The notes: a model not told the origin generated them from the sequence alone. A DNA stretch of 32,000 nucleotides from Paramicrosporidium saccamoebae KSL3 (GCA_002794465.1 MTSL01000095.1:4345-36344); one strand, 5' to 3'. Shown: positions 6,376-32,000, numbered from the stretch's first letter. Program-made: numbers and translations.

Positions 6376-6743
6376 TATTTTCTTCCAACGGCCCTGGTGC
6401 ACCGGCCAGGGTTGTCATCCACCAAACCACGAGCGTATCTGGCAGTATCAGGTTACAAAGACACTGAAAGAGAGGATGGCCACCTGGATACATTCAATCA
6501 ATGTAGCCGATATTGGCATTGGGAAATTTAAAGCAATAATCATTTGTCTCGGGACAACCAAGTCCACGTTTTAGAACAAGAAGAACGACATTGAGACATA
6601 TAATGTATCAAAATCCTTTACAACAGAAAATCACCTGATTGATGGATAGATATGTAGAATTTTGTACTCAAATGTAATGCCGACATTGGTCTATACGGAA
6701 CGCGGTTGATAGTGACATTCCATGCAGGGGCTCCTACCCGAAC

Positions 6744-10271: not shown

Positions 10272-10557
10272 TACAATCATATAGCAGCAGGTCCACTGGT
10301 GTCCTCTATTGTGTCCCAGGGGAAATTTTATGTAGTGTATAGTTGGTGGGTCTAAGAAATTTACTAGTCTCGGCTGCTTGATGGCGTTCGTGTTACACAG
10401 CATTCACTTTTCATTGGCGAGCCCGACTCAAATAAGCGGTCCCCCAAGCCGTTCTTGTCGTACTCAAATGGCTGCCTATAAAGAGGAGCCACATGCTTTA
10501 ATAAAAACAAGCACGTTCTTCAACGGTGTCTGTCTAATAACCATCCAAGACCACTAC

Positions 10558-10565: not shown

Positions 10566-10637
10566 CTCCCCGTCGGAGAATCGAACTCCGGTCTCATGCG
10601 TGACAGGCATGTGTACTAGCCACTATACGAACGGGGA
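10566..10637 (-). tRNA. tRNA-Asp(GTC), no intron, CCA not encoded
   Basis: Reverse complement: acceptor TCCCCGT/ACGGGGA plus discriminator G; anticodon arm CATGC-CTGTCAC-GCATG; T arm CGGAG-TTCGATT-CTCCG. Confidence 0.97.
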
Positions 10638-10643
10638 TAACAT

Positions 10644-10717
10644 CGCTCCCGGGTGGGCTCGAACCACCAACCTTACGATTAACAGTCGTACGCGCTAACC
10701 GGTTGCGCCACGGAAGC
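10644..10717 (-). tRNA. tRNA-Asn(GTT), no intron, CCA not encoded
   Basis: Reverse complement: acceptor GCTTCCG/CGGGAGC plus G; anticodon arm TACGA-CTGTTAA-TCGTA; T loop TTCGAGC. Confidence 0.97.
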
Positions 10718-11020
10718 CTGAATAAGGAGGGAAATTTTATTTAAAGTAGTATACGGAAATTCAAAAAACAGAAATTTTGATGCTACGTATTCGTAAGATT
10801 TGTTACATGGTAAGCAGCATCCGCTTATGACTGGCAGCCCAATCCAGATGGCGATCCTTGATCCCGTTTATCGTCTTGAAGATGGCGGCCTATAAAGGCG
10901 CCGAATACTAATAGGATTACCTGCTATTCAAGAGATTCTTTATTCCTGATTTGTAGTGTACTTTCTTTCAACTGAAGTAAAAGCTACAAACAAGCTCTGG
11001 CCCAACTTTAATTCGAAACG

Positions 11021-11214
11021 CTATGCTGTGAATAGATCCGAGAACAGTTGTGCCGGTTTCAGAGGCAATTCTGGATCATCAAGAGACAGGTCCGTTTGAA
11101 AAGTAGTACCGGAATTGCCATTTTGAATCGCAGTAGCAAAGAGTGCCAGCTTACGTGTATACACTGAGGGGTTGCCTGGGTTAGCATCACTGATACAGCC
11201 GTGCGATGTGCCAT
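11021..11214 (-). pseudogene. Internally deleted relic of the hydrolase family (copy 4)
   Basis: Family upstream element, then ATG GCA CAT CGC (MAHR), then in a shifted frame DANPGNPSVYTRKLALFATAIQNGNSGTTFQTDLSLDDPELPLKPAQLFSDLFTA*, which matches the copy 3 C-terminus KADPENLSLITRELLLFATAIRNNDPDIMFQMDQPPDDPELPLKMAQLFPGLFIA*. Confidence 0.88.
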
Positions 11215-11394
11215 GCTGACTTTCTACGCCCCCGGCTTTCTAACTGGTCCAGAGTCGTTTATTGGGCCAGTCAACCTGGACTATGTAAAAAATGCGATCG
11301 GTACATGTGAGGGAGCATGGTGGCACAGGTCTCTGTAAATACTAAATTCCACAGAGGATGAATGCTTTTTCATCACTCGTCTCTAATTGTGTGG

Positions 11395-11448
11395 TATGAA
11401 ATTACTATATATTTGCTTGGTATTCTACTTGAAGGGTCAGACGCCTGA
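11395..11448 (+). pseudogene. 3' remnant of small ORF B
   Basis: ITIYLLGILLEGS.. aligns with the end of ORF B (21583-21816) IAMHFLNALLEGVL*. A 4-nt deletion removes the original stop; downstream non-coding DNA also aligns with 21520-21582. Confidence 0.6.
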
Positions 11449-11579
11449 TGCCTGTGTGTAGGTAGTTAGTCAGCCCATACAGCCAAAGCCAGTTCCAGTG
11501 GGGCATTGATTTACTCGACCAGGTCCTGGCGCGCCCTGGGCTAAAATTCCAGTGGCATTGAGTGTTTCACTGGTCAAGT

Positions 11580-11861
11580 ATGAAAATTCCAATAATGACA
11601 CTCTTGCTGGCAGCTCTGTTAGCTCTCACACATGCTACTCATATTAATAACGAGCAGATTCGCTCGTTTTACATTCTAAGAGGTGAGCCACCATCTTTTT
11701 TTGAAGCTATGATTAATCTTGTCGATCCTGAAACCGGCCTCCTTATGGCCCTTGGCATTTGGGTTATTATTATCAACAATATACTTGACATCATGGAACT
11801 GATGTACTCTGGAGTCGAGGACGCCCCAATGGGTGGTTTAGTCCATGCCGAGGAACAATAG
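11580..11861 (+). CDS. Small signal-peptide plus TM protein, family A (copy A1, 93 aa)
   Basis: ATG at 11580: MKIPIMTLLLAALLALTHA (signal-like) then hydrophobic GLLMALGIWVIII. Homologous in protein and upstream DNA to 21239-21460. Confidence 0.75.
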   Translation: MKIPIMTLLLAALLALTHATHINNEQIRSFYILRGEPPSFFEAMINLVDPETGLLMALGIWVIIINNILDIMELMYSGVEDAPMGGLVHAEEQ

Positions 11862-12362
11862 AACAAATGAGTAATCTAGAAAGCCATCTCACAATCGAGG
11901 CTCGGCGAACCGAGGAGCGGTCTATAAAAAATACCGCATACTTTAGTAACTAGCCTCACCATTAAGCAATAGCTTTTATCGATGAGTCTGAGCCATCATA
12001 TACCATGCTATAAGGGTGTTTATCAATGAGTGGTGCTTTGAGCCCTAGTTGCCTAGAAATTATGCATTTTCGGTCACACCCCTCCTCTTGCCGTCAGAGT
12101 TAAAGCTGCGGGTTCAGATAGCTATTCTACAAGTCAGATCCGCCTGATTAAGAATAGTTGCCTAGAGATACGCTATATCGTTTACTAAATCAAGTTTTCC
12201 ATTCAACTAACAAAATTTGGTGACTGCCTTGATCCGAGCGTCTTAATATTCTATTGATCTTCCCAGCAACCATGCTATTCTTGGCACAAGACCCACTTTG
12301 ATCAGATGCGTAGTAAATACTGATACAAAACGAATAGGCATCTCTTGGCGACCCCGGCAAGA

Positions 12363-12599
12363 ATGAAGTTTGGACTAATTACTCCCACCCTCCTGGTCTT
12401 AACTTGCCTCGCCAGTTTTGTATTTGCATCCGAAACACTAGAAGGTGGAAAATCTGGAGATTTCTCCCAGCCTTTGTCGAAGATGCCCTGGAATACTATT
12501 CAGATGCCAGATGCACAATCACTCAGGGGTTTCTTGGGGTTTATAGTCGGTGTTGTGGGTTTCTACCTACTTGAAGTTTTTGTGGGAATGCACAAATAA
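12363..12599 (+). CDS. Small signal-peptide plus C-terminal TM protein (78 aa)
   Basis: ATG at 12363: MKFGLITPTLLVLTCLASFVFA then GFLGFIVGVVGFYLLEVFV; AATAAA overlaps the stop. Same architecture as ORF B; sequence homology not demonstrable by eye. Confidence 0.6.
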   Translation: MKFGLITPTLLVLTCLASFVFASETLEGGKSGDFSQPLSKMPWNTIQMPDAQSLRGFLGFIVGVVGFYLLEVFVGMHK

Positions 12600-12777
12600 A
12601 TAATCGAACTTTGTACACTTTATCAAGCCAAAAGCAATGCTTTAGACTGAGTAGTCCTCATTTCACGGATACTTTATTTTAGTATTCGAATGCCTCGAGC
12701 TTGGCTGCGCGCTCGGTGGCGAGTTGCCCCTTTATTGCTAGCACTCAGTTAAAGGAAAAACTGCCAATTAACAATTC

Positions 12778-14020
12778 ATGAATAGGATATGTAAAAGATG
12801 GTTTTCGGCTGGCCGGACCTTTGACCTCAATCTTGTCTCGCCAAATGGTCAGATACTCAATGGTGTGTATCAATGCAATGTAGATGGAAAAACATTCCCA
12901 AGCAACGGACTGGAGCTGGAATTCCTGGGCACAAGTAGCGCCCAAAGCACCCTGACCCGGAACGTATCATCTGTTGCCCTCAAATTCGGTATCCACCTGC
13001 GTTGTTATTAACGACGTCAGGCGGAGGTGTATTCCTATTTGATTGTGGAGAGGGCACGGTGCGACAAATGCTACGAGGGACGGTCAACCCGCTGGATGTA
13101 CGGGCACTATTTATAACACATTTGCACGGAGACCATTGCTATGGCGTACCGGGACTGGGTATGACCATGTTGGGATTGGAAAAGGGAAAGGAACGACCGC
13201 TACTGTTTGCACCCAAAGGCTTGGAAGAATGTTATCAAGGTCCAATGGGACTGCGTGGCTTCCAAACACGACCGATCCTCAAACCCAATAATCGTGGTTC
13301 GATACCCGAAAATGTACACTACTACTGGATCTCATGTATAGGCCATCCACTTTGATCATGTAAAGAAATGCTATAATGTATATGAAGACCAGCGGTTCAT
13401 TGTGAGGGCGGTGCCTATAAAACACACCGTCTTTTGCTTGGGCTATGTGATTGAGGAAAAGCCGAGACGGGGAAATTATAACATGGAAAAGGTACATGCG
13501 GCAGGTCTCTCACCGGGCGTCATTTTGGGCGAATTGAGTGCCAAAGGATCGCTCATCCTTGATGGTCGGGAAATTACGGCAGAATCCCTGATGGATCCGC
13601 CGAAACCGCCGCGGAAGATTGTGATCCTGGGCGACACATGCGATCCATCAGCGATTGCGCCGATTGCAATGGATGCAGACGTGTTGGTTCATGAGGCCAC
13701 CAATTTGGATGAGGAACGTACCGTCGCCTTTACATATATGCACAGCACGGCAGGCATGGCCGGGGCCTTTGCAAAGAGGATCAACGCCAAGAATCTAATA
13801 CTGACACACTTTAGTCCGCGGAATATGCGCGGAAATGAATACGACGAATGTGTCCATGTGCGCACCTTGGTGGAGCAAGCGAGACGGGCTTTTGGAAAGC
13901 CAAACGTTTTCCCCGCCCACGTATCCCAAGGATCATGCTAATGTTTAGGATTTCTGGAGGTTTCCTCTGCATTTGATGGGAAGAGACAGGACTGACCGGG
14001 CCATTCCGATTGTTGAATAG
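12778..14020 (+). CDS. ELAC1: Short-form tRNase Z (ELAC1/RNase Z-S type); join 12778-12988, 13021-13313, 13342-13920, 13949-14020
   Basis: LEFLGTSS..RN, LFDCGEG, ITHLHGDH, GP-type flexible arm, LGDT, HEAT, HST, LTHFSPR. Three introns join three track ORFs in frame and restore the terminal AHD motif. Confidence 0.9.
12989..13020 (+). other. Spliceosomal intron, 32 nt
   Basis: GTATCC...TTAAC..CAG; removal joins VALKF to GGGVFLFDCGEG. Confidence 0.85.
13314..13341 (+). other. Spliceosomal intron, 28 nt
   Basis: GTACAC...TAG; removal links the HLHGDH frame to the RAVPIKH frame. Confidence 0.75.
13921..13948 (+). other. Spliceosomal intron, 28 nt
   Basis: GTATCC...GCTAAT...TAG; removal gives PAH-DFWRFPL, restoring the AxD end motif of RNase Z. 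Confidence 0.8.
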
Positions 14021-14035
14021 ACATTAAATGTTGGG

Positions 14036-14261
14036 TGTAAAGATGAATACATTTCCAGGATGTAAAAATAGATTCATTTTTCAAGGTGTAAGGACAAGTC
14101 CCCTTTCAAGGTGTAAAGACAAATTCCCTTTCGAGGTGTAAAGACAAACCCATTTTCAGGATGTAAAAATAGATTCACTTTCAAAGTGAAAGAACAAGTC
14201 CCCTTTCAAGGTGTAAAGACAAACCCATTTTCAGGATGTAAAAATAAATTCATTTTCAAAG
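14036..14261. repeat. Minisatellite, 9 x ~25 bp, consensus near TGTAAAGACAAAYYCMTTTYCAAGG
   Basis: Unit starts at 14036, 14061, 14087, 14112, 14137, 14162, 14187, 14212, 14237; variant units recur in order. Confidence 0.9.
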
Positions 14262-14448
14262 TCCGCGACAATGCTTGCAGGACGAATTGGACCAACGAGC
14301 TCCAGTCTGTCGACCCGTCTGACGTCGAGCATTGCATGTGCTTTGCCTCTCAATCGGTTTCCTAACTGCATGCCGCCCGTGACGTTGGCTAGACACGACA
14401 TTTTTGCATATGACCAGGACAGCAATGGTCCGCATGACCACGTCTCCC

Positions 14449-15157
14449 ATGCTCCCGCGACCAAAATTGCCAGCTATCTGTCTGCGGGCCGTAAGAGCAC
14501 TCTTTTGAGTTATCCTGGACAACAGCGTCGCTGGGCGAGCAAGTTTACAGTCACTGACAGTAGAGACGCCCTGTACGCGTCGCCTGATATTACTGCGGTT
14601 CAGCGCAATAATACAGACGGAGAGACGAACCGCGCCTTTTCGTACTTTATGGTGGGAGCTACGGGAGTTTTGGGAGCAATGGGAGCCAAATCGACAGTGC
14701 TCAACTTTCTCACCAGCTGGTCAGCCTCCTCAGAGGCCCTTGCCATGGCACAGGTGGAGGTGGACCTGTCCAACATCCCGGAGGGTAAGAGCGTTGTGAT
14801 CAAGTGGCGTGGCAAGCCAATATTCATCCGTCATCGCACGTCGGGAGAGGTGGAGGAGGCTGCGGGTGTGAGCATGGCCGAACTGCGGGACCCACAAAGT
14901 GACGCAGATCGCACTCAGAAGCCCGAATGGATCGTCATGTTGGGCATCTGCACCCATCTCGGTTGTGTTCCTCTGGCGAACAGTGGTGACTACAATGGTT
15001 GGTATTGTCCCTGTCAGTACCCTCCTTTCTTTACAATTGACCTTGTAGCGGATCGCATTATGACATTAGCGGCCGGATTAGGAAGGGTCCTGCTCCATCC
15101 AATTTGGAAATTCCGACCTACAAGTTCCATGGTGAAGACCGTATTGTCATTGGATAG
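14449..15157 (+). CDS. RIP1: Cytochrome bc1 Rieske Fe-S subunit; preferred model join 14449-14490, 14526-15016, 15049-15157 (213 aa)
   Basis: [24 protein letters not shown]|HGSHYD (across the intron), GPAPSNL. The 5' exon gives the presequence-like [19 protein letters not shown]; the unspliced start at 14271 is an alternative. Confidence 0.92.
14491..14525 (+). other. Probable spliceosomal intron, 35 nt
   Basis: GTAAGA...AACAG; removal gives a typical-length Rieske precursor with a basic presequence. No clear branch site. Confidence 0.55.
15017..15048 (+). other. Spliceosomal intron, 32 nt
   Basis: GTACCC...TTGAC..TAG; removal restores the invariant CPCHGSHYD box. Confidence 0.95.
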
Positions 15158-15409
15158 AGGTCGATTGAGAATAAATAGTGTGTGGTTGGGGTGGTGTGAT
15201 TAGGTGAGTGTGAGTGGGTGAGTGTGTACATGTAGGAGCGAGAGAGCATTTAAAGATGAAATGCCAAGTTAGCAAGTCGAATGGCCAACTAATCGACTAA
15301 ATATCTATTACTTTGACCGGGATATATATGGTAGTGCTGACATTTGCCTTGGTCCTCCAAACACTATAATAGACGAACCAAAAACCAAAGCCATCCTTTC
15401 GTACTGAAA

Positions 15410-16330
15410 ATGTCGCTTCCGTTGGATATGGTGGAGAATTTACCAGACGTGCATACTCTTTTTGCAGTATACAATGGAAAATACTTTGAGAATGTGTTGG
15501 GTGCCACAACGCTCGAATGGAGTAACCGGATGACGCTGTGTGCGGGTCTGTGCTATCTTCGACGTATGGGAACTGCGCGATACTGTGTGATTCGACTGAG
15601 TCGACCATTATTGCAATATCGTCCTTATAGTGACACCATCTCGACGCTGCTGCATGAAATGTTGCATGCCTATCTTTGGGTAAAGGGGATGGGGGGCAAT
15701 GGATTGGATAGGGATGGCCATGGACCCGAGTTTTTACGTCATGCCGCCCGAATCAACAAAGCGGAAGGCAGCGCCATCAGCGTCTTTCACACATTCCATG
15801 AGGCGGTACAGGAGGCACGGAAGCATGTGTGGAAGTGCAATGGACCATGTGTCCATCGAGCACCATATTACGGGATAGTACAACGGGCCATGAACCGTCC
15901 CCCTCAACCTGCCGATCGTTGGTGGCGGGAGCATCAAAAAAGTTGCGGTGGAAGCTTTGTCAAGATTGCTGGTCCGGAGAGTAAAAAACGCACAACGAAA
16001 GCATTGGACTATTGGAGTCGGCTGGGAAAAGGTAATTTGGCACGGGATGATGTGGGAGGGTACCAATGTCCCTCTTGCCGCGATCATATGGCTGCGGATC
16101 TCGCCAGCCTCAAAACTCATCTCAACCTATGTAACCGCAAACAGTGTCCCGTCTGTGGTGTATTTCAAGCCATGAATCTTCTCGATGATCACATTGACGC
16201 TTGTCTCGGCGAAACAAACACTACTCTGAGTGCGTTGTCTATAGAGACTATATCATCCACCGATACTAATGGACAATCCCCAAATAATAGTTGCTCTAAC
16301 CCTACCCCTTACATAATAGATCTCACATAA
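15410..16330 (+). CDS. SPRTN: Spartan/SprT-family DNA-dependent metalloprotease
   Basis: EWSNRMTLCAGLC, LLHEMLHAYL (HExxH), GHGPEF, zinc-binding domain WKCNGPC...WWREHQKSCGGSFVKI, two C-terminal CxxC..H..C fingers, terminal IIDLT. First ATG is 15410. Confidence 0.9.
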   Translation: MSLPLDMVENLPDVHTLFAVYNGKYFENVLGATTLEWSNRMTLCAGLCYLRRMGTARYCVIRLSRPLLQYRPYSDTISTLLHEMLHAYLWVKGMGGNGLDRDGHGPEFLRHAARINKAEGSAISVFHTFHEAVQEARKHVWKCNGPCVHRAPYYGIVQRAMNRPPQPADRWWREHQKSCGGSFVKIAGPESKKRTTKALDYWSRLGKGNLARDDVGGYQCPSCRDHMAADLASLKTHLNLCNRKQCPVCGVFQAMNLLDDHIDACLGETNTTLSALSIETISSTDTNGQSPNNSCSNPTPYIIDLT

Positions 16331-16367
16331 TTTTACTTCCCCCCCCCCATCACACATACAACTTTAT

Positions 16368-17813
16368 TCATGTGTTTTGCGTGGATGAGTAGTGCAAAAT
16401 GTGTTTGACGGCTTCATCGCGGGTACCGTCGGGATGTTCATATTGCCAATCTAACAGCTCATTGATCAACAAACCAATCTGTGGGCCTTGGGCTACTCCA
16501 AGCAGCTCATGTAAATCTCGTCCACTAAGCAGCCCTCGCCAGGAATGTGCGTCCTGAAGTCCTAGAGCCGCCACCCGCTTAGTTGCTGCTTCGTATCGAT
16601 GCACTGTGGTTTCATCGTCAATGCCACCGAGCAGAATATGTCGGATGCAAGCCAATTCATAGCCCAGCAACCAATGACGTCCCAGCGACCGTACTAGTCG
16701 TCCCAGCAATCGCGCATCTTGACAATTCGTCTCCACCAGGGCTACAACACGATCAACCTGCGCCACAAGTTGGGTCACATCGGCCACATCCTGATTGGTG
16801 AATTTAAGCGAATCGCGCACAATACACCCCACGAGCGGTTCAGGCATTCGACGGGGTCGATCCACCATTTCCCCAACATGGGGCAATAATGCAGCACAAA
16901 GTAGGGCGAGTCGACGATTGGAACTCCAGCCGAGTCTACGATAGACTCGCAGAATTGTGCCGATGGTCGCATCTTCCGGTAGGGAATAGTTAGTACGATC
17001 CACCCCGGCAGGCAGATCAAAGACCAAATTGAACACTCTCAGTCGATGCATCATCTGTAGTCCCTCGAGAGCGTGTTTATCTCGCAAAATCTTGTCCAAC
17101 TCGGTGCCCACACGCTCGCGACTGATTTTGTTACGAAAGGCAGCATCCACTTCTTCGTCTTGGATGGCCCTTTCCAGGGCGGCATCCGTTCGGAATTGGA
17201 ACCGGGTAGCAAACCGAATAACCCGCAATAATCGCAAAGGATCGTCCATTAGTGTTTCCCGGGGTGGGAGTGGCGTGCGGATAATCTGTTCCTCGAGATC
17301 TGCAAAGCCAGTGCCACAAAAATCCTCCACCTCTTCAGTGTGAATGTTGTAAAAGAGCGCGTTGATGGTAATGTCTCGCCGTTGGGCATCCTGCAATGGT
17401 GTTCCAAACTGAACAATGGGAATGCGCGAATCATCTGAATACGTTTCAGAGCGCAAATTGGCAAAGTCAATGGGATGACCAAAAATGGTGAGGGTAGCCG
17501 TTTCGAGGTGTTTGGAGCGTTCCGGATTGGCCTGAATGACCCCATAGGCGCTGGATGGAATGTCATGCTGTTCCAAAAAGAAACGTAATCGTTCTGCAAA
17601 CTGCTGGCCCATCATGCGGTCAATGGCAATGTCGCAGTCATGTCCTTCCAGGCCCAGTAATTTGTCTCGCACCCATCCGCCGGCCACTCGCAGTGTGACG
17701 TCCAACTCCAGACGGACGCAGCATTCCCGTAGCAGCCCAAAAAGCTTCCGTTCCAACTCATTCAGCGTCAAGCAGTCCCGTGCAGGACGGGTTACTGAGG
17801 GAATGGGCGTCAT
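16368..17813 (-). CDS. CCA1: tRNA nucleotidyltransferase (CCA-adding, class II)
   Basis: LRVAGGWVRDKLLG, DCDIA, DFANLRSETY, DAQRRDITINALFYN, DDPLRLLRVIRFA, KISRERVGTE. First ATG is 17813 (track start 17885 is TTG). Confidence 0.95.
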   Translation of the reverse strand: MTPIPSVTRPARDCLTLNELERKLFGLLRECCVRLELDVTLRVAGGWVRDKLLGLEGHDCDIAIDRMMGQQFAERLRFFLEQHDIPSSAYGVIQANPERSKHLETATLTIFGHPIDFANLRSETYSDDSRIPIVQFGTPLQDAQRRDITINALFYNIHTEEVEDFCGTGFADLEEQIIRTPLPPRETLMDDPLRLLRVIRFATRFQFRTDAALERAIQDEEVDAAFRNKISRERVGTELDKILRDKHALEGLQMMHRLRVFNLVFDLPAGVDRTNYSLPEDATIGTILRVYRRLGWSSNRRLALLCAALLPHVGEMVDRPRRMPEPLVGCIVRDSLKFTNQDVADVTQLVAQVDRVVALVETNCQDARLLGRLVRSLGRHWLLGYELACIRHILLGGIDDETTVHRYEAATKRVAALGLQDAHSWRGLLSGRDLHELLGVAQGPQIGLLINELLDWQYEHPDGTRDEAVKHILHYSSTQNT

Positions 17814-17834
17814 GTAGCCAACCACCCGGGAGAG

Positions 17835-20189
17835 ATGTCGACGCAACAGGCTCAGTGTGCCAGGATGGACAGGGTTAGCGGGCAAGTCGTAGCCCAGTCC
17901 GCCTCATATGACCACTATTTCTTGCTGAAATTACTTCCACTAAATTCCAGCGATGGAGTCTTTCTGGCGGTCCAAGTGCTATTCTGCGATACTGATGTCA
18001 TTCCCTCTCTTATGGAACAGGTCATTTCCATTGACGTTGTACACGTCCGTCCCCCTCTAATCGTCTGTCACTTCAATGGCATCCATCTTGAAATACCTAC
18101 TGCAACGAACAATCTTTCCCCCGCTGTGGACGCTCTGATTGTAAAGGAAGAGATGCGCCATCTTCCGGTGCATTATAAGGGGACGGTTACTGGTTTAATG
18201 GAGGGCGGATATATCATAGACGATGGCCGAAGGGTGCTCAGTTCCCGTCACCTTCAAATTGGGATGGAGTGGACCTTTTATAATCTCGTCTGTCTCTTCG
18301 CGTCTGAAGAAGTTTTGGTGGAATGTCCCATCTTTACGGGCAGTCTGATCCCCGTTTCCTTATCTGGTCGTCGTCAAGAGCTGCGCACATTGCTAAAGGG
18401 AATAGTTTCGAGTTCCTACTTTGATGACGAGTCAAAGTATCAACGTCTTTGTCGACGGTTAGCGGGAGATGATCATGTGAAGCATTTTCTCGATCATTCA
18501 ACCACTGGATCCTGTGTCTTTTGCACGGCTCCGTGGGAATTTCATACCGTTGCTTCATGTACAGCTGGACCAGAAAGCAGGCTTACTGGGCTTTTGCTTG
18601 GAAAGTTGGAAATTTGTGCCAAAACAGGGCGCCTTTACTTGCGCGATTCGACAGGACAGATTGTCATTTATTCCACTCAGTCAATGGCATCGTTTGTTGA
18701 TCATTTGGTCCTCGTTTCAGATAGTGTACTGGTCGCAGAGACTGTCGAGGATATTTCGTTACGATATATTATTGCCAAAAAGATTACTGCAGTGTCATTG
18801 CTCACCAAGGACACAACTCTACTGGATAGATTTGATTTGCTCATCATCAAAGACGTCGGTATGCCTATACTTTTGGACTCTAACAAGCCCATGGTTGTTG
18901 CCATCGACGCTTATCATTTCGGTACTCTTCAGACCCATCGGCTTGAGATGCGGAAACAACAGTCAATAGAGCTGTCCATGTCTGCTTCCTGTCCTGTGCA
19001 AGCTGGCGACATTATCTTGAGGAGAGAGGACATGTTCTGGGTTCTTTTTTACGAGGCGGATGTAAGTCTGGAATCAAAACAGGCCAAAATTTCCTTCCAC
19101 ACGCCCCATCTCGTCAGCATTGTCTGTTCATCCGTAGCGGCAGACTATCTTGCACAATCTCAGACGCTGCTTCGTCAGGATTCGCTTAAAGTGACTGTAG
19201 AATCGAAAACCTTTCGAAAGGGCTCTGAAATTGGCTTGAAAAGCGCCTCCAACATTCGTACGCCCTTTTTCGCCGCCCACGCCATTGGCATTCCTGGTAG
19301 TAAGCATCTCTGTGTGACTGTTCGCACCGCAACAGATAAAATGCAACTCGTCATGAAACCAAATGCCAATTACCTCTATCCCATGTGTCTAGTACCGGGT
19401 GCAGTTATTGAGATTTCAAACGTCAAATCCACAGTTATTGGAGGCGGTGTTGACGGTTCCACGATCCACAGCTCCAAGGTCAGAATGCTCACTCCAACAA
19501 CTCGAACTAATATTCGTCTGGTGGGGTATGATCCTGACTATCAGCCCTCCAGCTCCTTTCCACTACGATTCCTCTACGAGTTGGCATCCGATTCGGCGTT
19601 GGAGGACATTGCTGTGATGGGAAAATTTTTTCGTTTTCTATCATTTCGAGTTACGGGTCATTGTATCAAATGCAGAAATGTCATTCAAAGTCGGAGATGC
19701 ATCGTTCATGGTGTCACTCCCGTCAACTACACTGTGGAAATTGTCCATCTGTTCACTGACAATACTTGGAACTGCGAAATGGTCATTGCAGATCACAAAC
19801 TCATGGTGATGGATTGGGATGCAATTTTTGATTTGTCCCTGGATGGGCCAGTGGAATATGTCGAAGGACAATCAATCGGAGGACATCAAACTCACAAGCA
19901 GCTAACCAGCGAGTCTCAATCCAACAACCCACCAGCCAACAACCCACCAACTAACAACCCACTAATCAACACACAACAATACAACGAAATGTCCAGACTG
20001 CCAGAGTTACTAATGCCCTTGAAGTCAAATGTCCTGTTTATTAGGGACTACACGGTCAAGGCCAAGGTGACATCATCCACACGACGACTACCACGATTGC
20101 AGGCTATTGAGATCGAACCAGTAGACTATGTGGAGCAGACACGCAGACTATTTGCCTTTCTAGATTCTACTGATAAAAGTTGTAATTAG
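17835..20189 (+). CDS. Probable CTC1-like multi-OB-fold protein (CST complex large subunit)
   Basis: LLGKLEICAKTGRLYLRDSTGQI (OB-fold L.D.TG type), YPMCLVPGAVIEISNV (resembles the CTC1 PLGLLPGA motif as I recall it), C-terminal CIKC...C..H zinc ribbon followed by LFTDNT. True start may lie downstream of 17835. Confidence 0.55.
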   Translation: MSTQQAQCARMDRVSGQVVAQSASYDHYFLLKLLPLNSSDGVFLAVQVLFCDTDVIPSLMEQVISIDVVHVRPPLIVCHFNGIHLEIPTATNNLSPAVDALIVKEEMRHLPVHYKGTVTGLMEGGYIIDDGRRVLSSRHLQIGMEWTFYNLVCLFASEEVLVECPIFTGSLIPVSLSGRRQELRTLLKGIVSSSYFDDESKYQRLCRRLAGDDHVKHFLDHSTTGSCVFCTAPWEFHTVASCTAGPESRLTGLLLGKLEICAKTGRLYLRDSTGQIVIYSTQSMASFVDHLVLVSDSVLVAETVEDISLRYIIAKKITAVSLLTKDTTLLDRFDLLIIKDVGMPILLDSNKPMVVAIDAYHFGTLQTHRLEMRKQQSIELSMSASCPVQAGDIILRREDMFWVLFYEADVSLESKQAKISFHTPHLVSIVCSSVAADYLAQSQTLLRQDSLKVTVESKTFRKGSEIGLKSASNIRTPFFAAHAIGIPGSKHLCVTVRTATDKMQLVMKPNANYLYPMCLVPGAVIEISNVKSTVIGGGVDGSTIHSSKVRMLTPTTRTNIRLVGYDPDYQPSSSFPLRFLYELASDSALEDIAVMGKFFRFLSFRVTGHCIKCRNVIQSRRCIVHGVTPVNYTVEIVHLFTDNTWNCEMVIADHKLMVMDWDAIFDLSLDGPVEYVEGQSIGGHQTHKQLTSESQSNNPPANNPPTNNPLINTQQYNEMSRLPELLMPLKSNVLFIRDYTVKAKVTSSTRRLPRLQAIEIEPVDYVEQTRRLFAFLDSTDKSCN
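19921..19965 (+). repeat. 15-nt coding tandem repeat x3 (NNPPA/NNPPT/NNPLI)
   Basis: caacaacccaccagc caacaacccaccaac taacaacccactaat inside the 784-aa ORF. Confidence 0.7.
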
Positions 20190-20240
20190 TGATTGTTACT
20201 GGATCAGATATATTCCAAGACCCATATTAAAGGTCCAACC

Positions 20241-20867
20241 ATGCAATATATACTAATGAAGCCGTGCATTCTGCTGTCCTGGTTGGTCTCGATCCCGCTG
20301 TGTGTCTCCACGGCTGTGGATCTAAAGATCCGCTTCGGTGCTGACCAACTCCATCTGCAAAAAACCGCCACTGCCACCACAGTGACCGTAGGGGTTTCGG
20401 GCCATCGTCTTCCTTACGCCCTTCTCTGGGACGATCAGCATCCCACTCGGGTCAAGGTTGCAGTGGGTAGACGCAGAACTGTCATCCAGATGGATCAGCC
20501 CGATGACAAGTTGTATCGTTTCCTCCTCACTATGCGCTCCCAGTCGCTGCCGTTTTACCGTCTGCTCAAGCTCCTCATTGCTCCTCCCTCTCCACCTCAA
20601 CTTCTCCTACCCCTTCCCCTCCACAACGCCATCCGCTCCATCCCATCAGCAATGCAGATTCTGGTTGGCACGACATTAGACTCCTTTGAGACAACTCAGG
20701 TGCGATGTCTTGTGCCCGAAGTGGTGGATCGCAACCTGACCACTGAAGGGAGCTTTCAACAAAAGAATGGACGGCACAGAGACGTAATTCGGGCAGCACT
20801 TTTGGACGGAAATGTTATAGTCAGGGTATTGATGGCCTCTGATCCAGCCCTCCCCATACTCCACTAA
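20241..20867 (+). CDS. Hypothetical protein with signal-peptide-like N-terminus
   Basis: ORF of ~208 aa from the first ATG (20241); MKPCILLSWLVSIPLCVSTA hydrophobic leader; no family recognised. Confidence 0.55.
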   Translation: MQYILMKPCILLSWLVSIPLCVSTAVDLKIRFGADQLHLQKTATATTVTVGVSGHRLPYALLWDDQHPTRVKVAVGRRRTVIQMDQPDDKLYRFLLTMRSQSLPFYRLLKLLIAPPSPPQLLLPLPLHNAIRSIPSAMQILVGTTLDSFETTQVRCLVPEVVDRNLTTEGSFQQKNGRHRDVIRAALLDGNVIVRVLMASDPALPILH

Positions 20868-21238
20868 GATGCAAATAAATTATCCCTTTTGGTGCGATGG
20901 CATATCCACGGACCAAGAATCAAGGGTCTATTGATGGGTGAGCTTACTTTTATTAAAGTATATTACCTCTTCATATGTAACCATTCTTAATATAACCAAA
21001 CTGAGCTGTGGAGCCGCTATTCGAGTCGGACTCACCAATAACAAGTGGATGTTGTTTAACAGGGTCCTTTAGTGCGCGAGAGCATACCTTTGCTAAAGGC
21101 GTCATTGTAAACCGCCGCACTAGATTGTGGGATGGCCTATCGGGGTTATCAACCATAAACGGATACCGTAACATGACACTTTATTGCAGGACCACATTGT
21201 CCATTCACTCTATTGTGCCCTGAGGTGGACTCTGTCAT

Positions 21239-21460
21239 TCATAAGCCAACCACTAGTTTAATGCAGTACAAAAAGTATCTGATAATCAAGAACTGAACGG
21301 TAGCGACCCAAAGGAAGCCAGTTTCAAAATTGATAAAATTGTGCAAACTTTCAGCTATGGATTCCGCCCCTTGTTGTGGCAAGGGACCCGGGCAGACTTG
21401 GGCGGCATGTGTGTGCACTGTCAGAATCGCCAGTAAGAGTGAAACTATCGTAGCTTTCAT
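21239..21460 (-). CDS. Small signal-peptide plus TM protein, family A (copy A2, 73 aa)
   Basis: MKATIVSLLLAILTVHTHA...NFINFETGFLWVATVQFLII; aligns with A1 (NLVDPETGLL) and A3 (QQGVES..NFANNGFGFL). Confidence 0.75.
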   Translation of the reverse strand: MKATIVSLLLAILTVHTHAAQVCPGPLPQQGAESIAESLHNFINFETGFLWVATVQFLIIRYFLYCIKLVVGL

Positions 21461-21582
21461 ATCCGACTACAGCAAAACACTTAATGCCGCTCCAGGGTGT
21501 GCCAAGGCTTAATTGAGTGAATAAATGCCTCATTGGCTCCGATTTTATGGACTGGCTGACTATCTACACAGGCGTGAGGCGT

Positions 21583-21816
21583 CTACAAGACCCCTTCAAG
21601 CAGAGCGTTAAGAAAATGCATAGCAATAAGGGTGATCAAAAAATACAAGATGGGGTCGCATGAGTGCCCATCTTGGAATCGGGCTAGTGCTTGAATTTCT
21701 GCTCGCCCGTCATTTCTCTTTGGTGGAATTCCTACTCCTGCCGCTTCGACTCCAAAAGCCGCACTGAAAATAAAAAGCATGGCAAGGAAGGTCAAGGCGG
21801 TAAGTCGCAGGCTCAT
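21583..21816 (-). CDS. Small signal-peptide plus C-terminal TM protein B (77 aa)
   Basis: MSLRLTALTFLAMLFIFSAAFG leader and ILYFLITLIAMHFLNALL C-terminal hydrophobic helix; a 3' remnant exists at 11395-11448. Confidence 0.65.
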   Translation of the reverse strand: MSLRLTALTFLAMLFIFSAAFGVEAAGVGIPPKRNDGRAEIQALARFQDGHSCDPILYFLITLIAMHFLNALLEGVL

Positions 21817-21953
21817 CTTGAGTAAAGATTAAATCCTTTTCCGTCTTCAAATGGAACCTGTGACAGTCCTGGCTTACTGCTTGAAAAATCTGCAGTACCA
21901 AATTCCAAACCCAATATCGTTCAAAATACGAGTGTCGCCTAGTGGTTATATAT

Positions 21954-21995
21954 ACCAGTGTCGCCATGTTCCCCCATATGCACTGATCGCACTTT
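21954..21995 (+). promoter_or_regulatory. Conserved 42-nt non-coding block in the divergent promoter region
   Basis: ACCAGTGTCGCCATGTTCCCCCATATGCACTGATCGCACTTT matches the reverse complement of 11289-11330 at 33/42 without gaps. Confidence 0.55.
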
Positions 21996-22071
21996 CATTA
22001 TGTGATTTAGGGGGCTGCCTAATTAAATTAGTGACCCCGGACCGATCAGAACGCAGGACGTAAAAACGACT

Positions 22072-25000
22072 ATGGCACACCGCGTGACCGTACCATATAC
22101 AAAAATACGGGGCTTTACACTCTTGTTATCCGTGCTGTCTAGTATAGTTTTCGCGTCGAGTCTGCACTGGCAGTCTAATAACAACTTATACATTGCTACA
22201 CAGTACGAAAGGTTCTGGCAAGAAACGGTACAAAGGGTCAATCTTGGTGACCAGAACGCGACTGGTAATGCTATCCACCGTTGGAAGAACCGCCCCATAA
22301 CTTTTTCACGGGGAATCAACCAAAATGGAGCAGAAACTATAGTATCTTGGCCACGTAATGCTTTGAATCAGGGGGTCTCAGCATCGTCACATCTTGCTTT
22401 CTCGCTTATTCGGGATTTGACTTTGGGAGAAGTATCAAATTTGGATCCTGAAGCATGCACAGTGTTTGCAAAGTACCTTGACCCGACCCAGTTACAGAGC
22501 GTCAGCACAGAGTGCACGGCACGTCTTGTAGCCAACTGTAACAATCCATTAGTACGTGGGAATTCCGCCCTGTCCCTTCGGGGAATTCCCTACAGTTGGT
22601 TTGTTGGAGAACTTGGTATTCACCTGTTCACCGCTCTGCATGACCATGGTCTCTTGTCAAACTTGCCAGCTATTACGCTATCAACACTATTCTCGACAGA
22701 GCGCTTTTGCAGCTTGCTCAGGGCAGAACACATTGGTTCGGTGGAGACTCCCGAGTATCCACTCAAATCCTTGGCTCCAGAATGTGTGGCAAAGATGCAA
22801 AACTTGGACTGTGTGCCACTTGCGCCGGCGATTGTCGGGGCCATGGGCCCGGCAGCATTTTCAAAGATGGGGGTGCTAGTCCATGCGGACACTTTCAAAA
22901 GAATGTCTGCGATACAATACGCTAGTTATGGTCAGGACGTGCCTGAACTTCCAAGGAAACAATGTGCAGGCCGTCTTGAGTGGCAGGATTTGCTCGCCAA
23001 TGTGGATTACTTGAAAGGATTGCCAAGGCTCTTTGAACCATACGATGTTGCCTATCCAATTCCCGATGTCTCGCTAACAAAAGAAATCTTTGCAGAGCTG
23101 GCAGACCATTCACCGGCAATCGCAGGCCGTCTTCTGGTTGTTCTTCCTGTCTTACCCGACGACATCCTTTCCCTATGTGGTCCGAGGGCACTTTATAGCC
23201 TACGGGCGTACAAATGTCTCCAGTTCATCGACAGCGGAATTGATGTTCTGGGCGACCTTAACCACCATTCAAACAGTCGTCAGATTATCGAAAACATTCC
23301 TTCTGAATATTGCAAGCATCTGAGTCTGGAAGACTACTTAAAGTACAAATGGATCCGCGCCAGTCTAAGTAGCGAATGTCGAGAAAAGTTACCTTTCAAG
23401 ACTGACCCCGAGGCAATAAAACAAGCACCCGAGATGGCTGATGAGAATTACAAGGCAGAGCTTTTTCCAAATGAGCAAAGACACTTTACCACTGAGGAAG
23501 AATTGGGGGCTCTCGTGACGGATATAGCATGGGTTCCTTGCAGTGTCCATAATACTCATGCAGATCTTGAATGTTCTCAAGGACTTTTTTCTGTTCCATT
23601 GGATTACGAGTCACCCAACGGCGAATGGATAAACGTGGAAGTGTATCGATACATTTTTATTGGAGCCAACCCAACATCACAGGTTATAATGCTAGCGGGT
23701 GGTCCAGGTGGATCTGTGTTTCGATATAAATCTTGCACCGATAAAATCTTACGCAGGACGTACGACTCGACAGCAGTGTATTATTACGAACATCGTGGAT
23801 TAGGTGCAAATGGATTCAAACCAGACCACATCTCTGCCCGTCCATTGCATGACATTATCTCCACTGCGCCCTTTGACATGAAATATCTGACTGTTGAGAA
23901 CGCAGCATTGGATGTGAGTCTGTTTGCCAAAGCGATTAAACGCGACATTCCGGCCACAAGCACGCAAGTTGGGCTGTTTGGAGTGTCGTATGGAGCAGCA
24001 CTGGCTCACCATGTGGTGCAGCTGTTCCCAAACATGTTTGATTTTGCGGTATTAGCAGGGGTACCTTCCATCCCTGGAGAAACAGGTATTGATAATTACA
24101 ACGGATTGCTACTCCATTGTCAAATGGATGAATTCTGCAGATCAAAGATTGGAACCGTTGCCGATTTCAAGGCTGTTCTCAAAGAGGTTGCATCTAATCG
24201 TCATTTGAATCAGTGCACCGAATATTTTCACGAAACACTCCGCCTTGAAGAGCAATGGACGGTTGGTAGAAGGATCCGATCGATCGGAGAACAGCTTATA
24301 TCAGACCTAACCAACGCAATGACGGCGCGTCTTTTATTACCAGTGATAAAGTCAACCTTTGACTGTCAGAATTACAGTATCTACAAATGCGCGCTTCACA
24401 GTGTCATGAATTTGAGAACGTCTGCTTATCCTCCTGTACCATTGAAGAAACCCACCGGGCATCATAAGAAGGATGAGTCTAATGATACCATTTTAGATGT
24501 TGTTTCCCTTGATTATCGCCTGAAAGACATGAAGTTTGACATTATCGGAGCGCAGGAAAAGCAGTTAGAGCTATTTTCGAGCCTCACCAAGGAAGACTCT
24601 ACATACGACACTTATCGTCGCGCTGGTGAATGTCTAGCGGGACGACGGCTATCGCAAATCAAACCAGCAGTGACTAGAAAGACCTTTTTTATTATTTTTC
24701 AGAACCTACTGGATCTAGTTACACCATTTCAAGCTGGCGAAAATTTGTTTGCAAAAATTGAGGCCCCCCAGAAATGGCTCATTAGAACTGATTCCCATCA
24801 GCATTCCTACTCAGAGGTGCTCATGGCGATTCTGGTTCAGGGGGCTACCTTTGGTGGAAATATTATGTTCAATGAGCTGCAGGCTAAAGTCGGTACTACG
24901 GATATTGGCCTTCCGGGCTTTTGGGACTTGAGCAGTCTGCCAGCCGTCAAGGGAATTTGGGACATTGTCAGCGACATTAAACACAAAACCGAAGCCCCAA

Positions 25001-25488
25001 TTGTTCCTCCAAGAATAATGAAAGTGGGCTCAATCAAAATTGCCCAGTTCCGATCCATCATGGCCTCATTTAGAAACAGATTGACCTGGGGTCCCTCAAA
25101 AGAGGCATCACCCACTGTCAATGTAACGGTAGGGTGGTTTGTCCCTGGTAAAAACGGCATTAAGATGAACAAGTTTCAACCGAAAGGGACTCAGTCTATC
25201 CGTCACATAATTGTGTTCCCAAGGATTGATGAATCGCGGCAGCAACTCATTCAGCGCCTTTTTGGCATAATCGATCAACTCCAATGTTCTGTTTACGTCC
25301 TCTGTGCAAAGGCTGCTATCAAGGCCGACCCAGAAAATCTCTCACTGATTACCCGTGAATTGTTACTCTTTGCTACTGCGATTCGTAATAACGATCCTGA
25401 CATTATGTTTCAAATGGACCAGCCTCCTGATGATCCGGAACTGCCTCTGAAAATGGCGCAGCTGTTTCCAGGCCTGTTCATAGCTTAA
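22072..25488 (+). CDS. Secreted alpha/beta-hydrolase family protein, copy 3 (longest, with ~150 aa C-terminal extension)
   Basis: ECSQGLFSVPLDYESPNGEWINVEVYRY (TAP-like entry motif), VIMLAGGPG, YEHRGLG, GVSYG, QNLLDLVTP, HQH; hydrophobic N-terminus. Confidence 0.92.
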   Translation: MAHRVTVPYTKIRGFTLLLSVLSSIVFASSLHWQSNNNLYIATQYERFWQETVQRVNLGDQNATGNAIHRWKNRPITFSRGINQNGAETIVSWPRNALNQGVSASSHLAFSLIRDLTLGEVSNLDPEACTVFAKYLDPTQLQSVSTECTARLVANCNNPLVRGNSALSLRGIPYSWFVGELGIHLFTALHDHGLLSNLPAITLSTLFSTERFCSLLRAEHIGSVETPEYPLKSLAPECVAKMQNLDCVPLAPAIVGAMGPAAFSKMGVLVHADTFKRMSAIQYASYGQDVPELPRKQCAGRLEWQDLLANVDYLKGLPRLFEPYDVAYPIPDVSLTKEIFAELADHSPAIAGRLLVVLPVLPDDILSLCGPRALYSLRAYKCLQFIDSGIDVLGDLNHHSNSRQIIENIPSEYCKHLSLEDYLKYKWIRASLSSECREKLPFKTDPEAIKQAPEMADENYKAELFPNEQRHFTTEEELGALVTDIAWVPCSVHNTHADLECSQGLFSVPLDYESPNGEWINVEVYRYIFIGANPTSQVIMLAGGPGGSVFRYKSCTDKILRRTYDSTAVYYYEHRGLGANGFKPDHISARPLHDIISTAPFDMKYLTVENAALDVSLFAKAIKRDIPATSTQVGLFGVSYGAALAHHVVQLFPNMFDFAVLAGVPSIPGETGIDNYNGLLLHCQMDEFCRSKIGTVADFKAVLKEVASNRHLNQCTEYFHETLRLEEQWTVGRRIRSIGEQLISDLTNAMTARLLLPVIKSTFDCQNYSIYKCALHSVMNLRTSAYPPVPLKKPTGHHKKDESNDTILDVVSLDYRLKDMKFDIIGAQEKQLELFSSLTKEDSTYDTYRRAGECLAGRRLSQIKPAVTRKTFFIIFQNLLDLVTPFQAGENLFAKIEAPQKWLIRTDSHQHSYSEVLMAILVQGATFGGNIMFNELQAKVGTTDIGLPGFWDLSSLPAVKGIWDIVSDIKHKTEAPIVPPRIMKVGSIKIAQFRSIMASFRNRLTWGPSKEASPTVNVTVGWFVPGKNGIKMNKFQPKGTQSIRHIIVFPRIDESRQQLIQRLFGIIDQLQCSVYVLCAKAAIKADPENLSLITRELLLFATAIRNNDPDIMFQMDQPPDDPELPLKMAQLFPGLFIA

Positions 25489-25546
25489 CATTTAAAGGTG
25501 AGAATGGTCACTGCCAAGTTGTACGGAAGCTCTTTCGTGACTTGCT

Positions 25547-25933
25547 TTATTGCAGGCTGCGGGGGGGAGTGCATAACGGAACAAAATCCCCAATGAAAAA
25601 ATTTCCATTACAAATTTCGCAACGTCCGTCTGCCTTACTGTCCAGTAAGACGGACAAATCACACATTGCTTTTTCTAGGTATTCGGTGATTCCCAATAAA
25701 GCTTTGCTAATCACTAACCCGGCGAAGATGGTTGAAAGGAAGCCGAATCCATTATTGGCAAAATTCCAAATAGTTCTATACATGGATTCCACTCCTTGTT
25801 GTAAAAAACGACTCGGGTAATCCTGCACGGATGTGTGTGCTATCAGGATCGCCAACAAGAGTGTCACTGCTGTAGCACTTACGTTTGATTGCAGTGAAAC
25901 GCGTAATCCCATCGAAAACCCAATCCAGGGCAT
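25547..25933 (-). CDS. Family A small membrane protein, divergent copy A3 (shifted start; may be a pseudogene)
   Basis: VSATAVTLLLAILIAHT..QDYPSRFLQQGVES..NFANNGFGFL aligns with A2. The ancestral ATG position reads GTA (25882); in-frame ATGs lie at 25912 and 25933. Confidence 0.55.
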   Translation of the reverse strand: MPWIGFSMGLRVSLQSNVSATAVTLLLAILIAHTSVQDYPSRFLQQGVESMYRTIWNFANNGFGFLSTIFAGLVISKALLGITEYLEKAMCDLSVLLDSKADGRCEICNGNFFIGDFVPLCTPPRSLQ

Positions 25934-26134
25934 GTCAAAGCTTGGCCGGCTGATTTCTGATGAAAATTCTGATCCGAGATGCCTTTCCAATAAGATTTAT
26001 GAGTTGACGCTCTCCGATGCTGCAATGCAAAACAACTATCCCAGCCTTACTCTTCAAATGGACAAGTCTCCTGATGTTGCGTGGTCATGGGATCATCACA
26101 AGGTGAGACAGTGGCCCCGGCATCAAGCATCATT

Positions 26135-31428: not shown

Positions 31429-32000
31429 CGAGGCAAGCTAGACAGTCAGCTACGTGCGTTGTTCTTGTACCATCACAACACAAGCGACAATCCAGGCCAG
31501 TGATACCTTGGTGCCCTTCATCGTATCCCCCAGAAACTCTATCAATGCGCGGGGGTTTCAATCCTGTCAAAAGGCTTGTTTATTATTGGAGGAGAGTATG
31601 CCATATGTGCGAATCAGGGTTTTCAATCAAGGAGCACCATTACAAATTTTTATCTCCTGCACTCTCTCCTTTATAGAATAAAGCTACTCCTTGCATCATG
31701 CATTCCAATCTGTAAATTGAGTGTAACAAATGAGTTTATCGCGGACTAGCTACTACTAGTTGGACGAAAAAGTTCATTTTATTAAACTGTATTTGTGATA
31801 GTCAAGTAGGGACCCTTTGCTAGTCCGGACTCGTGGAGATACTATCTCATGGTGCTCTCCTCTATAGACCGCCACTCTCAATATTATGTACTTTAATTGT
31901 AGGATAACTATCTAGATTGGGCCCGCCAATAATTAGACACTGTCTTGTAATTATTCCACGATCTATGGACACGCAATAGCAAATAAACGCTAAAAGTTGG

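Follow-up and report, generated by a model that had tools for sequence, protein, structure and literature searches.

A stretch of 32,000 nucleotides (nt) of the genome of Paramicrosporidium saccamoebae KSL3 (GCA_002794465.1 MTSL01000095.1:4345-36344; hereafter, the window) holds what is most probably an old, locally amplified, and partly decayed cluster of repeated units, to which we assign a probability of roughly 0.8. The units join a gene for a hydrolase similar to Hip1 and the TAP group to a small open reading frame (ORF), termed A, and the cluster seems to be the outcome of ordinary gene-family evolution. It includes an inverted homology between two loci, termed X and Y, which also involves a second small ORF (B) and a dispersed repeat (C). 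The protein of hydrolase copy c3 maps to this contig without mismatch, and its paralogs are listed in databases as P. saccamoebae proteins. The contig is 55,111 bp long, positions in its record (MTSL01000095.1) equal window positions + 4344, and about 72 kb of P. saccamoebae DNA was inspected in all. The cluster was detected only in P. saccamoebae and close metagenomic relatives. P. saccamoebae lives as a parasite within the nucleus of amoebae and has a compact genome, for which 0.53% of repeats was reported, and this genome was assembled from a mixed sample of amoeba, bacteria, and parasite and annotated using MAKER with keep_preds=1, so that ab initio predictions were kept (PMC5701793). The original prediction, made from the sequence alone, had rightly taken the organism for a parasite and knew of no description of the locus; indeed, the locus is mentioned neither in the genome paper (PMC5701793) nor in the literature search.

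Inverted homology and the repeated unit

The segment 11016-12207 is an inverted, diverged copy of 20923-22095 plus 25311-25493, with about 55-75% identity, and this homology is real and far beyond chance. When 10900-12700 was used as a blastn query against the whole window, 11016-11200 matched the reverse complement of 25311-25493 (72%, E 3e-27), 11191-11344 that of 21940-22095 (65%, E 4e-10), 11401-11635 that of 21405-21627 (66%, E 4e-22), 11702-11775 that of 21280-21353, and 12118-12189 that of 20949-21020, while a third copy of A appeared as a match between 11516-11630 and the reverse complement of 25832-25948. These blocks are collinear in Y and in reverse-complemented X and comprise genes and intergenic DNA, the arrangement that characterizes an inverted segmental duplication, and the same X/Y pairs were recovered in a separate repeat search of the window (I9, I12).

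The inverted duplication claimed in the original prediction is, thus, confirmed by the common order of the blocks, as is its extension into non-coding DNA, since spacer and leader blocks align. The 42-nt block that it described lies at 11289-11330 and agrees with the reverse complement of 21954-21995 at exactly 33 of 42 positions, every one of the spacer, leader, and "past A" motifs that it quoted is present in the sequence, and the third A paralog does flank the other side of hydrolase copy c3 (A3, 25547-25933). Other parts of it have to be amended. The motifs cited as homologous DNA past A exist, but they sit inside copies of the dispersed C repeat, which are also found near unrelated genes and on another contig. 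The sequence called a hydrolase relic in Y is a relic, but not a 5' stump, because the start codon and about 29 nt are fused to the last ~180 nt of the gene, the tail beginning at the equivalent of c3 position 25311 according to blastn and an alignment of the 3' ends. Likewise, the B remnant in Y is homologous sequence, but it matches only the last ~22 codons of B in a frame broken by stops. Finally, X and Y are real, but more copies exist than had been listed, namely a second relic of a hydrolase tail (25962-26081), a remnant of leader and promoter (2937-3280), and, immediately outside the left edge of the window, a fourth A and a fourth hydrolase.

The repeated unit measures approximately 4.5-5 kb and, with the hydrolase on the plus strand, consists in order of one or more C repeats, A on the minus strand, the leader/promoter of A, a homolog of the B tail, a spacer of variable length, the hydrolase promoter block, and the hydrolase. 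At least six units are present on the contig, with those of c0, c1, c2, and Y in one orientation and those of X (which holds c3) and D3 in the opposite one. Both the blastn maps and a five-way spacer alignment (X 20900-22100; Y 11185-12230, reverse-complemented; U0, which separates c0 from c1 immediately beyond the left edge of the window; D3 25480-26090; and U1 2914-3404) reveal the same order of blocks in all five spacers, and 11208-11557 directly matches 2937-3280 in U1 by blastn. The units differ in what they have retained: the hydrolase of Y has an internal deletion of ~3.2 kb, D3 keeps only A3 and a hydrolase tail, U1 keeps the leader, the B-tail homolog, and the promoter without A and C, and U0 keeps a copy of A (A0) in which the hydrophobic segments have been lost. 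Approximately 8.7 kb of housekeeping genes separate Y from X.

As for the history of the cluster, an ancestral unit would have been copied at least six times, and the mirror arrangement of X and Y would result from common descent combined with one inversion or inverted duplication. Decay by deletion would have followed, with Y losing ~3.2 kb of its hydrolase body, D3 being reduced to A3 and a tail, U1 losing A, and A0 losing its hydrophobic segments. The duplications are old, their synonymous divergence (~0.6-0.9) being about as deep as the split from a metagenomic sister organism (contig L007, from the Joint Genome Institute (JGI) metagenome 3300042203). There, a housekeeping gene orthologous to the one ending at 20867 shows 83% nucleotide identity, a synonymous divergence (dS) of 0.91, and a ratio of nonsynonymous to synonymous divergence (dN/dS) of 0.06, and ~256 nt beyond it, at the site orthologous to X, only a C-terminal hydrolase tail is found (88-residue ORF), with no A or B. 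Therefore, the site already held a hydrolase in the common ancestor of the two organisms and has been altered in content since.

Parasites carry lineage-specific, locally amplified families of secreted proteins, such as the subtelomeric multigene families of microsporidia. The present cluster resembles the latter in its tandem and inverted genes for proteins with signal peptides, its restriction to one lineage, and its mixture of intact, truncated, and pseudogenized members. However, housekeeping genes are interspersed here, the copies are old (dS 0.6-0.9), and the enzymes are under purifying selection; the likeness does not imply a subtelomeric position.

The hydrolase family

Four hydrolases are encoded on the contig: c0, partial at the contig end; c1 (1123 residues; NCBI, P0002), broken by a 10-N assembly gap exactly at the left edge of the window; c2 (972-1001 residues), in which the start codon homologous to that of the other copies is located at 6375; and c3 (1138 residues). 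Among these four copies, the proportion of synonymous differences (pS) is 0.42-0.53, dS is 0.62-0.92, and dN/dS is 0.25-0.34 along the whole gene, values that mark the duplications as old and, as far as sequence comparison can tell, all four hydrolases as functional and under purifying selection.

The c3 protein comprises a hydrophobic N-terminus (residues 12-32), a helical N-terminal domain of ~470 residues, a catalytic domain, and a C-terminal extension of ~135 residues. An exhaustive HMMER search yielded 258 relatives at E <=0.001, most of them with ~600 residues and the catalytic domain only. All four paralogs share the nucleophile elbow GVSYG, which includes Ser639 (c3 numbering), and its Ser and last Gly are invariant in 29 homologs, as are the GGPG oxyanion motif (G543-G544-P545-G546) and R575-G576 in both sets. 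Asp881, within the motif NLLDLVTP, and His911 are invariant in all alignments, and four Cys residues are invariant across the 29 homologs. Asp881 aligns to the DxxTP motif of Hip1, and both residues would be the putative catalytic Asp and His after the lid.

A profile of the 29-sequence family retrieved Hip1/CaeA of Mycobacterium tuberculosis at E 1.5e-9 to 3e-9, together with prolyl iminopeptidases, and superseded a four-paralog profile that had given only marginal GxSxG matches against the PDB. Similarly, full-length c3 modelled with AlphaFold from the four-paralog alignment was unusable (predicted local distance difference test (pLDDT), 32), whereas the model built from the 29-homolog alignment reached a pLDDT of 86.7. 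The best Foldseek matches of the latter were Hip1, TnmK1/2, DM3, DPP7, and prolyl endoproteases (E 1e-13 to 1e-9, TM-score 0.4-0.5), with Hip1 at E 1.4e-13 and probability 1.00, but a TM-score of only 0.41-0.47. The Pfam matches of c3 itself fall below the curated cut-offs, while its paralog P0006 passes that of Abhydrolase_1. Taken together, sequence profiles and the predicted model identify the hydrolase as a lid-bearing serine hydrolase of the S33/S28 type with a Hip1/TAP-like alpha/beta fold. The secreted hydrolase of peptidase or esterase type that had been proposed is, thus, sustained as a predicted class by the signal-peptide-like N-terminus, the catalytic motifs, and the fold, and these proteins are likely secreted or surface serine peptidases or esterases. 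With Hip1 (Rv2224c, CaeA) and the Streptomyces TAP group (MEROPS S33-type), they share a core with a helical lid, GGPG, GxSxG, the Asp and His residues, and, by prediction, export. However, they are only ~14% identical (TM-score 0.4-0.5), are eukaryotic, and carry the ~470-residue N-terminal helical domain and, in c1 and c3, also the ~135-residue extension.

The N-terminal domain (residues 1-470, window 22072-23480) is covered by no Pfam family, and its relatives are only uncharacterized metagenomic proteins of ~780 residues (P0032, P0033), which carry a signal peptide and are anchored by a transmembrane segment at the C-terminus. Such a terminal anchor is also present in some metagenomic proteins related to the catalytic domain (P0008, P0009) and is absent from the P. 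saccamoebae copies. The C-terminal extension of c1 and c3 is conserved in the metagenomic relative P0157, which has the same architecture and 56% identity. Two scans of metagenome contigs for hydrolase relatives with flanking sequence gave none that could be confirmed.

Stand-alone hydrolase tails, corresponding to the last 55-90 residues (ELxLFATAIxNxNPxxxFxMDxxPxxPELPLKMAxLFPxLFxx), occur at L007 465-731, at 11021-11190 (-), and at 25962-26081 (+). The L007 tail has its own ATG and a dN/dS of 0.29-0.38 against c3 and c1, and the Y tail has a frame open for ~70 codons, no in-frame ATG, and a dN/dS of 0.35-0.44 against c1 and c3. These open tails are either recent deletions or a sign that the tail has a function of its own.

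The small ORFs and their adjacency to the hydrolases

The original prediction correctly recognized A as a small ORF that recurs; its N-terminus resembles a signal peptide and is followed by a further hydrophobic segment. A1 (93 residues), A2 (73 residues), and A3 (121-128 residues) align at 28-34% identity and have two hydrophobic segments each, at matching positions, while A0 lacks both. They constitute an unannotated orphan family of small hydrophobic proteins, and A is probably a real, fast-evolving gene family for a predicted small membrane or secreted protein, with a promoter of its own and with constraint limited to the reading frame and the hydrophobic layout. The A frame is free of stops in all four paralogs, whereas each of the other two frames contains 3-10 stops, and all indels are multiples of three. 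In a neutral simulation with 0.3 substitutions per site, the probability of an open frame was ~0.15 for A1, ~0.15 for A2, and ~0.03 for A3. The best-conserved stretch between X and Y extends from the A signal peptide through ~120 nt upstream, and a CCAAT motif is found in all five spacers. This leader block is 68-75% identical between X and Y in 50-nt windows (89 of 120 positions, p = 8e-4 against a neutral proxy of 60%) and more conserved than synonymous sites. An Rfam search over the whole window returned two tRNAs only and, therefore, the block is no known RNA. Moreover, A1 and A3 persist although the neighbouring hydrolase has been deleted.

Only X has an intact ORF B (77 residues); in the other units, the alignment is confined to its last ~22 codons, in frames broken by stops. 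The spacer that holds its N-terminal half spans 290 nt in X and 42, ~50-90, and ~180 nt elsewhere, and it is unalignable. Thus, B, which stands without comparative support, would be a young or a chance ORF. Its birth by a single insertion in X was considered and rejected, since the spacer is unalignable and differs in length in each unit, so that insertion and deletion are indistinguishable. Just beyond Y, an unannotated 78-residue ORF at 12363-12599 (+) has a hydrophobic N-terminus and a C-terminal hydrophobic segment, in a layout and length like those of B; the two show no significant similarity (E 0.24) and have only architecture in common.

Several observations weigh against the cluster of hydrolase and small-ORF units as described, and most of them concern A. 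The dN/dS of the A paralogs is 0.73-1.10, with nonsynonymous and synonymous proportions (pN and pS) about equal even in the signal-peptide part and both as high as the synonymous divergence of the hydrolases; therefore, constraint on A at the sequence level is unsupported. A profile search of 5.8 billion proteins found no A homolog outside the contig and matched only the annotated A1, the sole annotated copy, which comes from the MAKER run that kept ab initio predictions, so that its NCBI annotation is not evidence of expression. Moreover, the hydrolase tails left in Y and D3 have almost coincident starting points, as would be expected from a single shared deletion. This is contradicted by the similarity of A and its leader, which groups Y with X and not with D3. 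More than one order of events is, thus, compatible with the data, and gene conversion may have blurred that order. In addition, the left contig end breaks inside c0 and c1 has an assembly gap, so that the size of the array is a minimum, and the rest of the genome may harbour additional units or more distant copies of A.

It is also conceivable, albeit unlikely, that A and B are non-coding duplicated spacer with frames open by chance, in which case the "leader" would regulate the hydrolase as a distal element or be of another nature. A dN/dS near 1 throughout, the lack of homologs elsewhere in the A profile search, the absence of A2, A3, and B from the genome annotation, and the frame of A0, open despite the loss of its hydrophobic segments and, thus, an example of how open frames can last without obvious function, would all agree with this possibility. 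However, the joint chance of open frames in A1, A2, and A3 is ~7e-4 at 0.3 substitutions per site, and the in-frame indels, the stops in both other frames, the two-segment layout kept in three copies, and the conserved block with its CCAAT motif directly upstream of the A start codon argue for coding sequence. The units themselves are hardly the creation of a short-read metagenomic assembly that mis-joined or duplicated them, an explanation with a very small probability: although the contig ends inside c0, c1 contains the 10-N gap, and the sample was a mixture of amoeba, bacteria, and parasite, the copies differ in 25-45% of their nucleotides and by many indels, far too much for collapsed or duplicated reads, and every copy has unique flanks.

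The adjacency of A and the hydrolase had been interpreted as a co-regulated secreted module, in which hydrolase and A/B would be driven by a shared divergent promoter, A/B would serve as anchor, chaperone, or inhibitor, and selection would maintain the arrangement. The close head-to-head position (B and A2 start 255 and 611 nt, respectively, from the c3 start), the long retention of the A ORFs, and the anchor-less P. saccamoebae hydrolases, which leave room for a separate anchor when compared with P0008 and P0009, are in favour of such a module, which is nevertheless improbable and was not borne out. Every instance of A beside a hydrolase traces back to the same ancestral unit, which was copied six times or more, so that these linkages amount to a single observation, as the caveat of the original prediction that linkage might reflect duplication and not function had anticipated; no independent linkage was found outside the copies of this duplication. 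Purifying selection is apparent in the hydrolase (dN/dS 0.25-0.34) and not in A (0.73-1.10), and B exists only once. Linkage and retention are also decoupled, since A1 and A3 survive beside deleted hydrolases and c1 and c2 are kept without an upstream A gene. Furthermore, A and the hydrolase have their own conserved promoter-proximal blocks, set apart by the unalignable spacer of 42-290 nt. Hence, A2/B and c3 resemble bidirectional-promoter gene pairs in being divergent and 255-611 nt apart, but they differ in having two separate conserved blocks with a variable spacer, and the pairing is not conserved outside the duplicates.

The surroundings of more distant hydrolases were searched with tblastn and blastn and scanned for small ORFs whose ends are hydrophobic. 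No A/B-like ORF or small ORF with a signal peptide and a transmembrane segment was found in the 7 kb upstream of the P. saccamoebae paralog P0007 (1374 residues, MTSL01000039) or downstream of P0006 (1901 residues, MTSL01000113), upstream of which the sequence is only 125 nt long, nor around the relative P0013 (9-kb contig) or in the 580 nt downstream of a close relative on L006. The lack of A/B neighbours at other paralogs, which the original prediction had itself named as counter-evidence, is, thus, largely what was observed (P0007, P0006 downstream, P0013, and the L006 relative), and the dN/dS near 1 that it had named in addition was found for A, while B has no second copy to compare. The A-hydrolase adjacency seems to be inherited, with no evidence of joint action. 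It is likewise improbable that the A proteins are real, rapidly diversifying small membrane proteins that tether or regulate the anchor-less hydrolases at the parasite surface in the amoeba nucleus, replacing the C-terminal transmembrane anchor of the relatives; if A were a partner of the hydrolase, the unit would be a two-gene host-interaction cassette amplified as a whole.

The C repeat, neighbouring features, and implications

C is a dispersed element of ~150 nt with 12 copies, according to an nhmmer profile, in the ~72 kb of P. saccamoebae DNA, including two copies behind RING-finger genes and two on another contig, MTSL01000113. It begins with TGTTAAAC, ends with TTCAACA, and contains CTATAAAGA (TATA-like) and AATAAA; its termini are TG...CA and form a short inverted repeat. 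Perfect 5-bp flanking repeats with identical boundaries accompany three copies, namely GACCC (X), GTAAC (U0b), and GATCC (L004 14039-14167), each of them preceded by T[AT]AAA, the other copies being too decayed to score for flanking duplications. Of nine scorable copies, seven follow a gene in its own orientation, at a distance of 10-190 nt from the stop codon. C may, thus, be a solo long terminal repeat (LTR) or a small element moved by an integrase of the retroviral type that favours the 3' ends of genes. No full-length element with gag/pol or matching ends was found in the ~72 kb read. In yeast, the sigma elements of Ty3 adjoin tRNA genes. C is similar to solo LTRs and these sigma elements in its TG...CA ends, 5-bp duplications, TATA-like motif, AATAAA, and the tRNA pair that it flanks, but it is only ~150 nt long and most copies follow a gene on the same strand, 115-190 nt after its stop codon.

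In X and U0, a young C is nested in an old C at the same place, with different flanking repeats and, therefore, part of the similarity among X, Y, and U0 derives from repeated insertion and not from segmental duplication alone. C was also considered as a 3' coding exon of A, since most differences between the copies in X and U0 fall on third codon positions; this was ruled out because the position bias (12/7/16) is not significant, frameshifts occur in other copies, and C is a dispersed element bordered by duplications. The element is undescribed, and the genome paper reports almost no repeats. Besides C, ~180 nt of a spacer of the sister organism (L007 316-490) match an unrelated P. saccamoebae contig (L005 88-267) with 65% identity (E 4e-12), and this stretch may represent a second family of dispersed repeats.

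Other features were observed near the cluster, whose elements are listed in Table 1. The gene for a Rieske iron-sulfur protein (annotated 14271-15203) contains an unannotated 32-nt intron at 15017-15048 (GTACCC...TTGTAG), right after the CPC codons. Its splicing restores the conserved C-terminus, while the deposited 310-residue model reads through it and ends in the wrong frame, and ultra-short introns may be under-annotated in the P. saccamoebae genome. Directly upstream of this gene and overlapping its start, a tandem array at 14054-14283 holds at least seven copies of the 25-nt repeat TTTCAAGGTGTAAAGACAAAyyCCC. Three tandem RING-finger paralogs, two of which precede a C element, occupy 30727-31428 and positions to the right of the window (L010 7077-7661, 8218-9118, 10001-10453).

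Table 1. Positions of the cluster elements and C copies (window coordinates unless another sequence is named).
Feature	Position	Strand	Characteristics
Hydrolase c1, 5' part	1-2943	-	No stop over 2943 nt; gene runs on leftward past the 10-N gap; dN/dS 0.29-0.34 against the other copies
Spacer U1, c1-c2	2937-3396	-	Hydrolase promoter block, B-tail homolog, A-leader remnant
Hydrolase c2	3397-6402	-	ORF; repeat pairs I1, I3, I5, I7, I10; dN/dS 0.25-0.34; no C-terminal extension
C copy W1	10382-10532	+	nhmmer E 1e-34; 114 nt downstream of the DNA polymerase eta stop
tRNA-Asp(GTC), tRNA-Asn(GTT)	10566-10717	-	ARAGORN, Rfam; a C copy on each side
C copy W2	10799-10940	+	nhmmer E 1e-29
Y, internally deleted hydrolase	11016-11214	-	Start codon 11214; fusion near 11191-11200; stop 11021-11023; 72% to reverse complement of 25311-25493
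Y, hydrolase promoter-proximal block	11215-11344	-	65% to reverse complement of 21940-22095; includes the 42-nt block 11289-11330
Y, B-tail homolog (non-coding), then A leader/promoter	11401-11579	+	66% to reverse complement of 21405-21627; stops in the B frame; X-Y leader 74%
A1, 93-residue ORF	11580-11861	+	Two hydrophobic segments; NCBI: 88 residues, start 11595
Y, two decayed C copies	11873-12207 (11873-11948, 12114-12207)	+	nhmmer E 1e-4, 6e-11; hold the "past A" motifs
X, C copies	20922-21230	-	Young 20922-21070, flanked by GACCC/GACCC; old, decayed 21078-21182
A2, 73-residue ORF	21239-21460	-	Two hydrophobic segments; unannotated
X, A leader/promoter block	21461-21582	-	CCAAT motif; best-conserved X-Y part; in all five spacers
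B, 77-residue ORF	21583-21816	-	Intact only in X; N-terminal half in X-specific spacer ~21650-21940
X, hydrolase promoter-proximal block	21940-22071	+	Conserved in X, Y, U0, U1; 57-70% pairwise identity
Hydrolase c3, 1138 residues	22072-25488	+	Signal-peptide-like N-terminus, helical domain, alpha/beta-hydrolase domain, C-terminal extension
A3, 121-128-residue ORF	25547-25933	-	ATG 25912 or 25933; convergent with c3
D3, second hydrolase-tail relic	25962-26081	+	70% to 25356-25437; 71% to c1 tail; abuts the start of an HD-domain gene
C copies, window	10382-10532, 10799-10940, 11873-11948, 12114-12207, 20922-21070, 21078-21182, 31834-31954
C copies, other sequence	L002 13593-13739, 13739-13852; L010 7822-7953; L004 8523-8660, 14039-14167

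These findings leave general principles unchanged, and their value lies in the annotation by-products that they provide for a published genome, namely the orphan family A of small hydrophobic proteins and an undescribed transposon-like repeat at the 3' ends of genes. For genome scanning, they illustrate that a repeated linkage inside one cluster is a single observation and that short dispersed repeats can lengthen the apparent extent of a segmental duplication. With regard to the parasite, a compact, repeat-poor genome keeps an old and still-selected family of at least four predicted secreted Hip1/TAP-like hydrolases with a novel N-terminal domain, which are plausible host-interaction enzymes.

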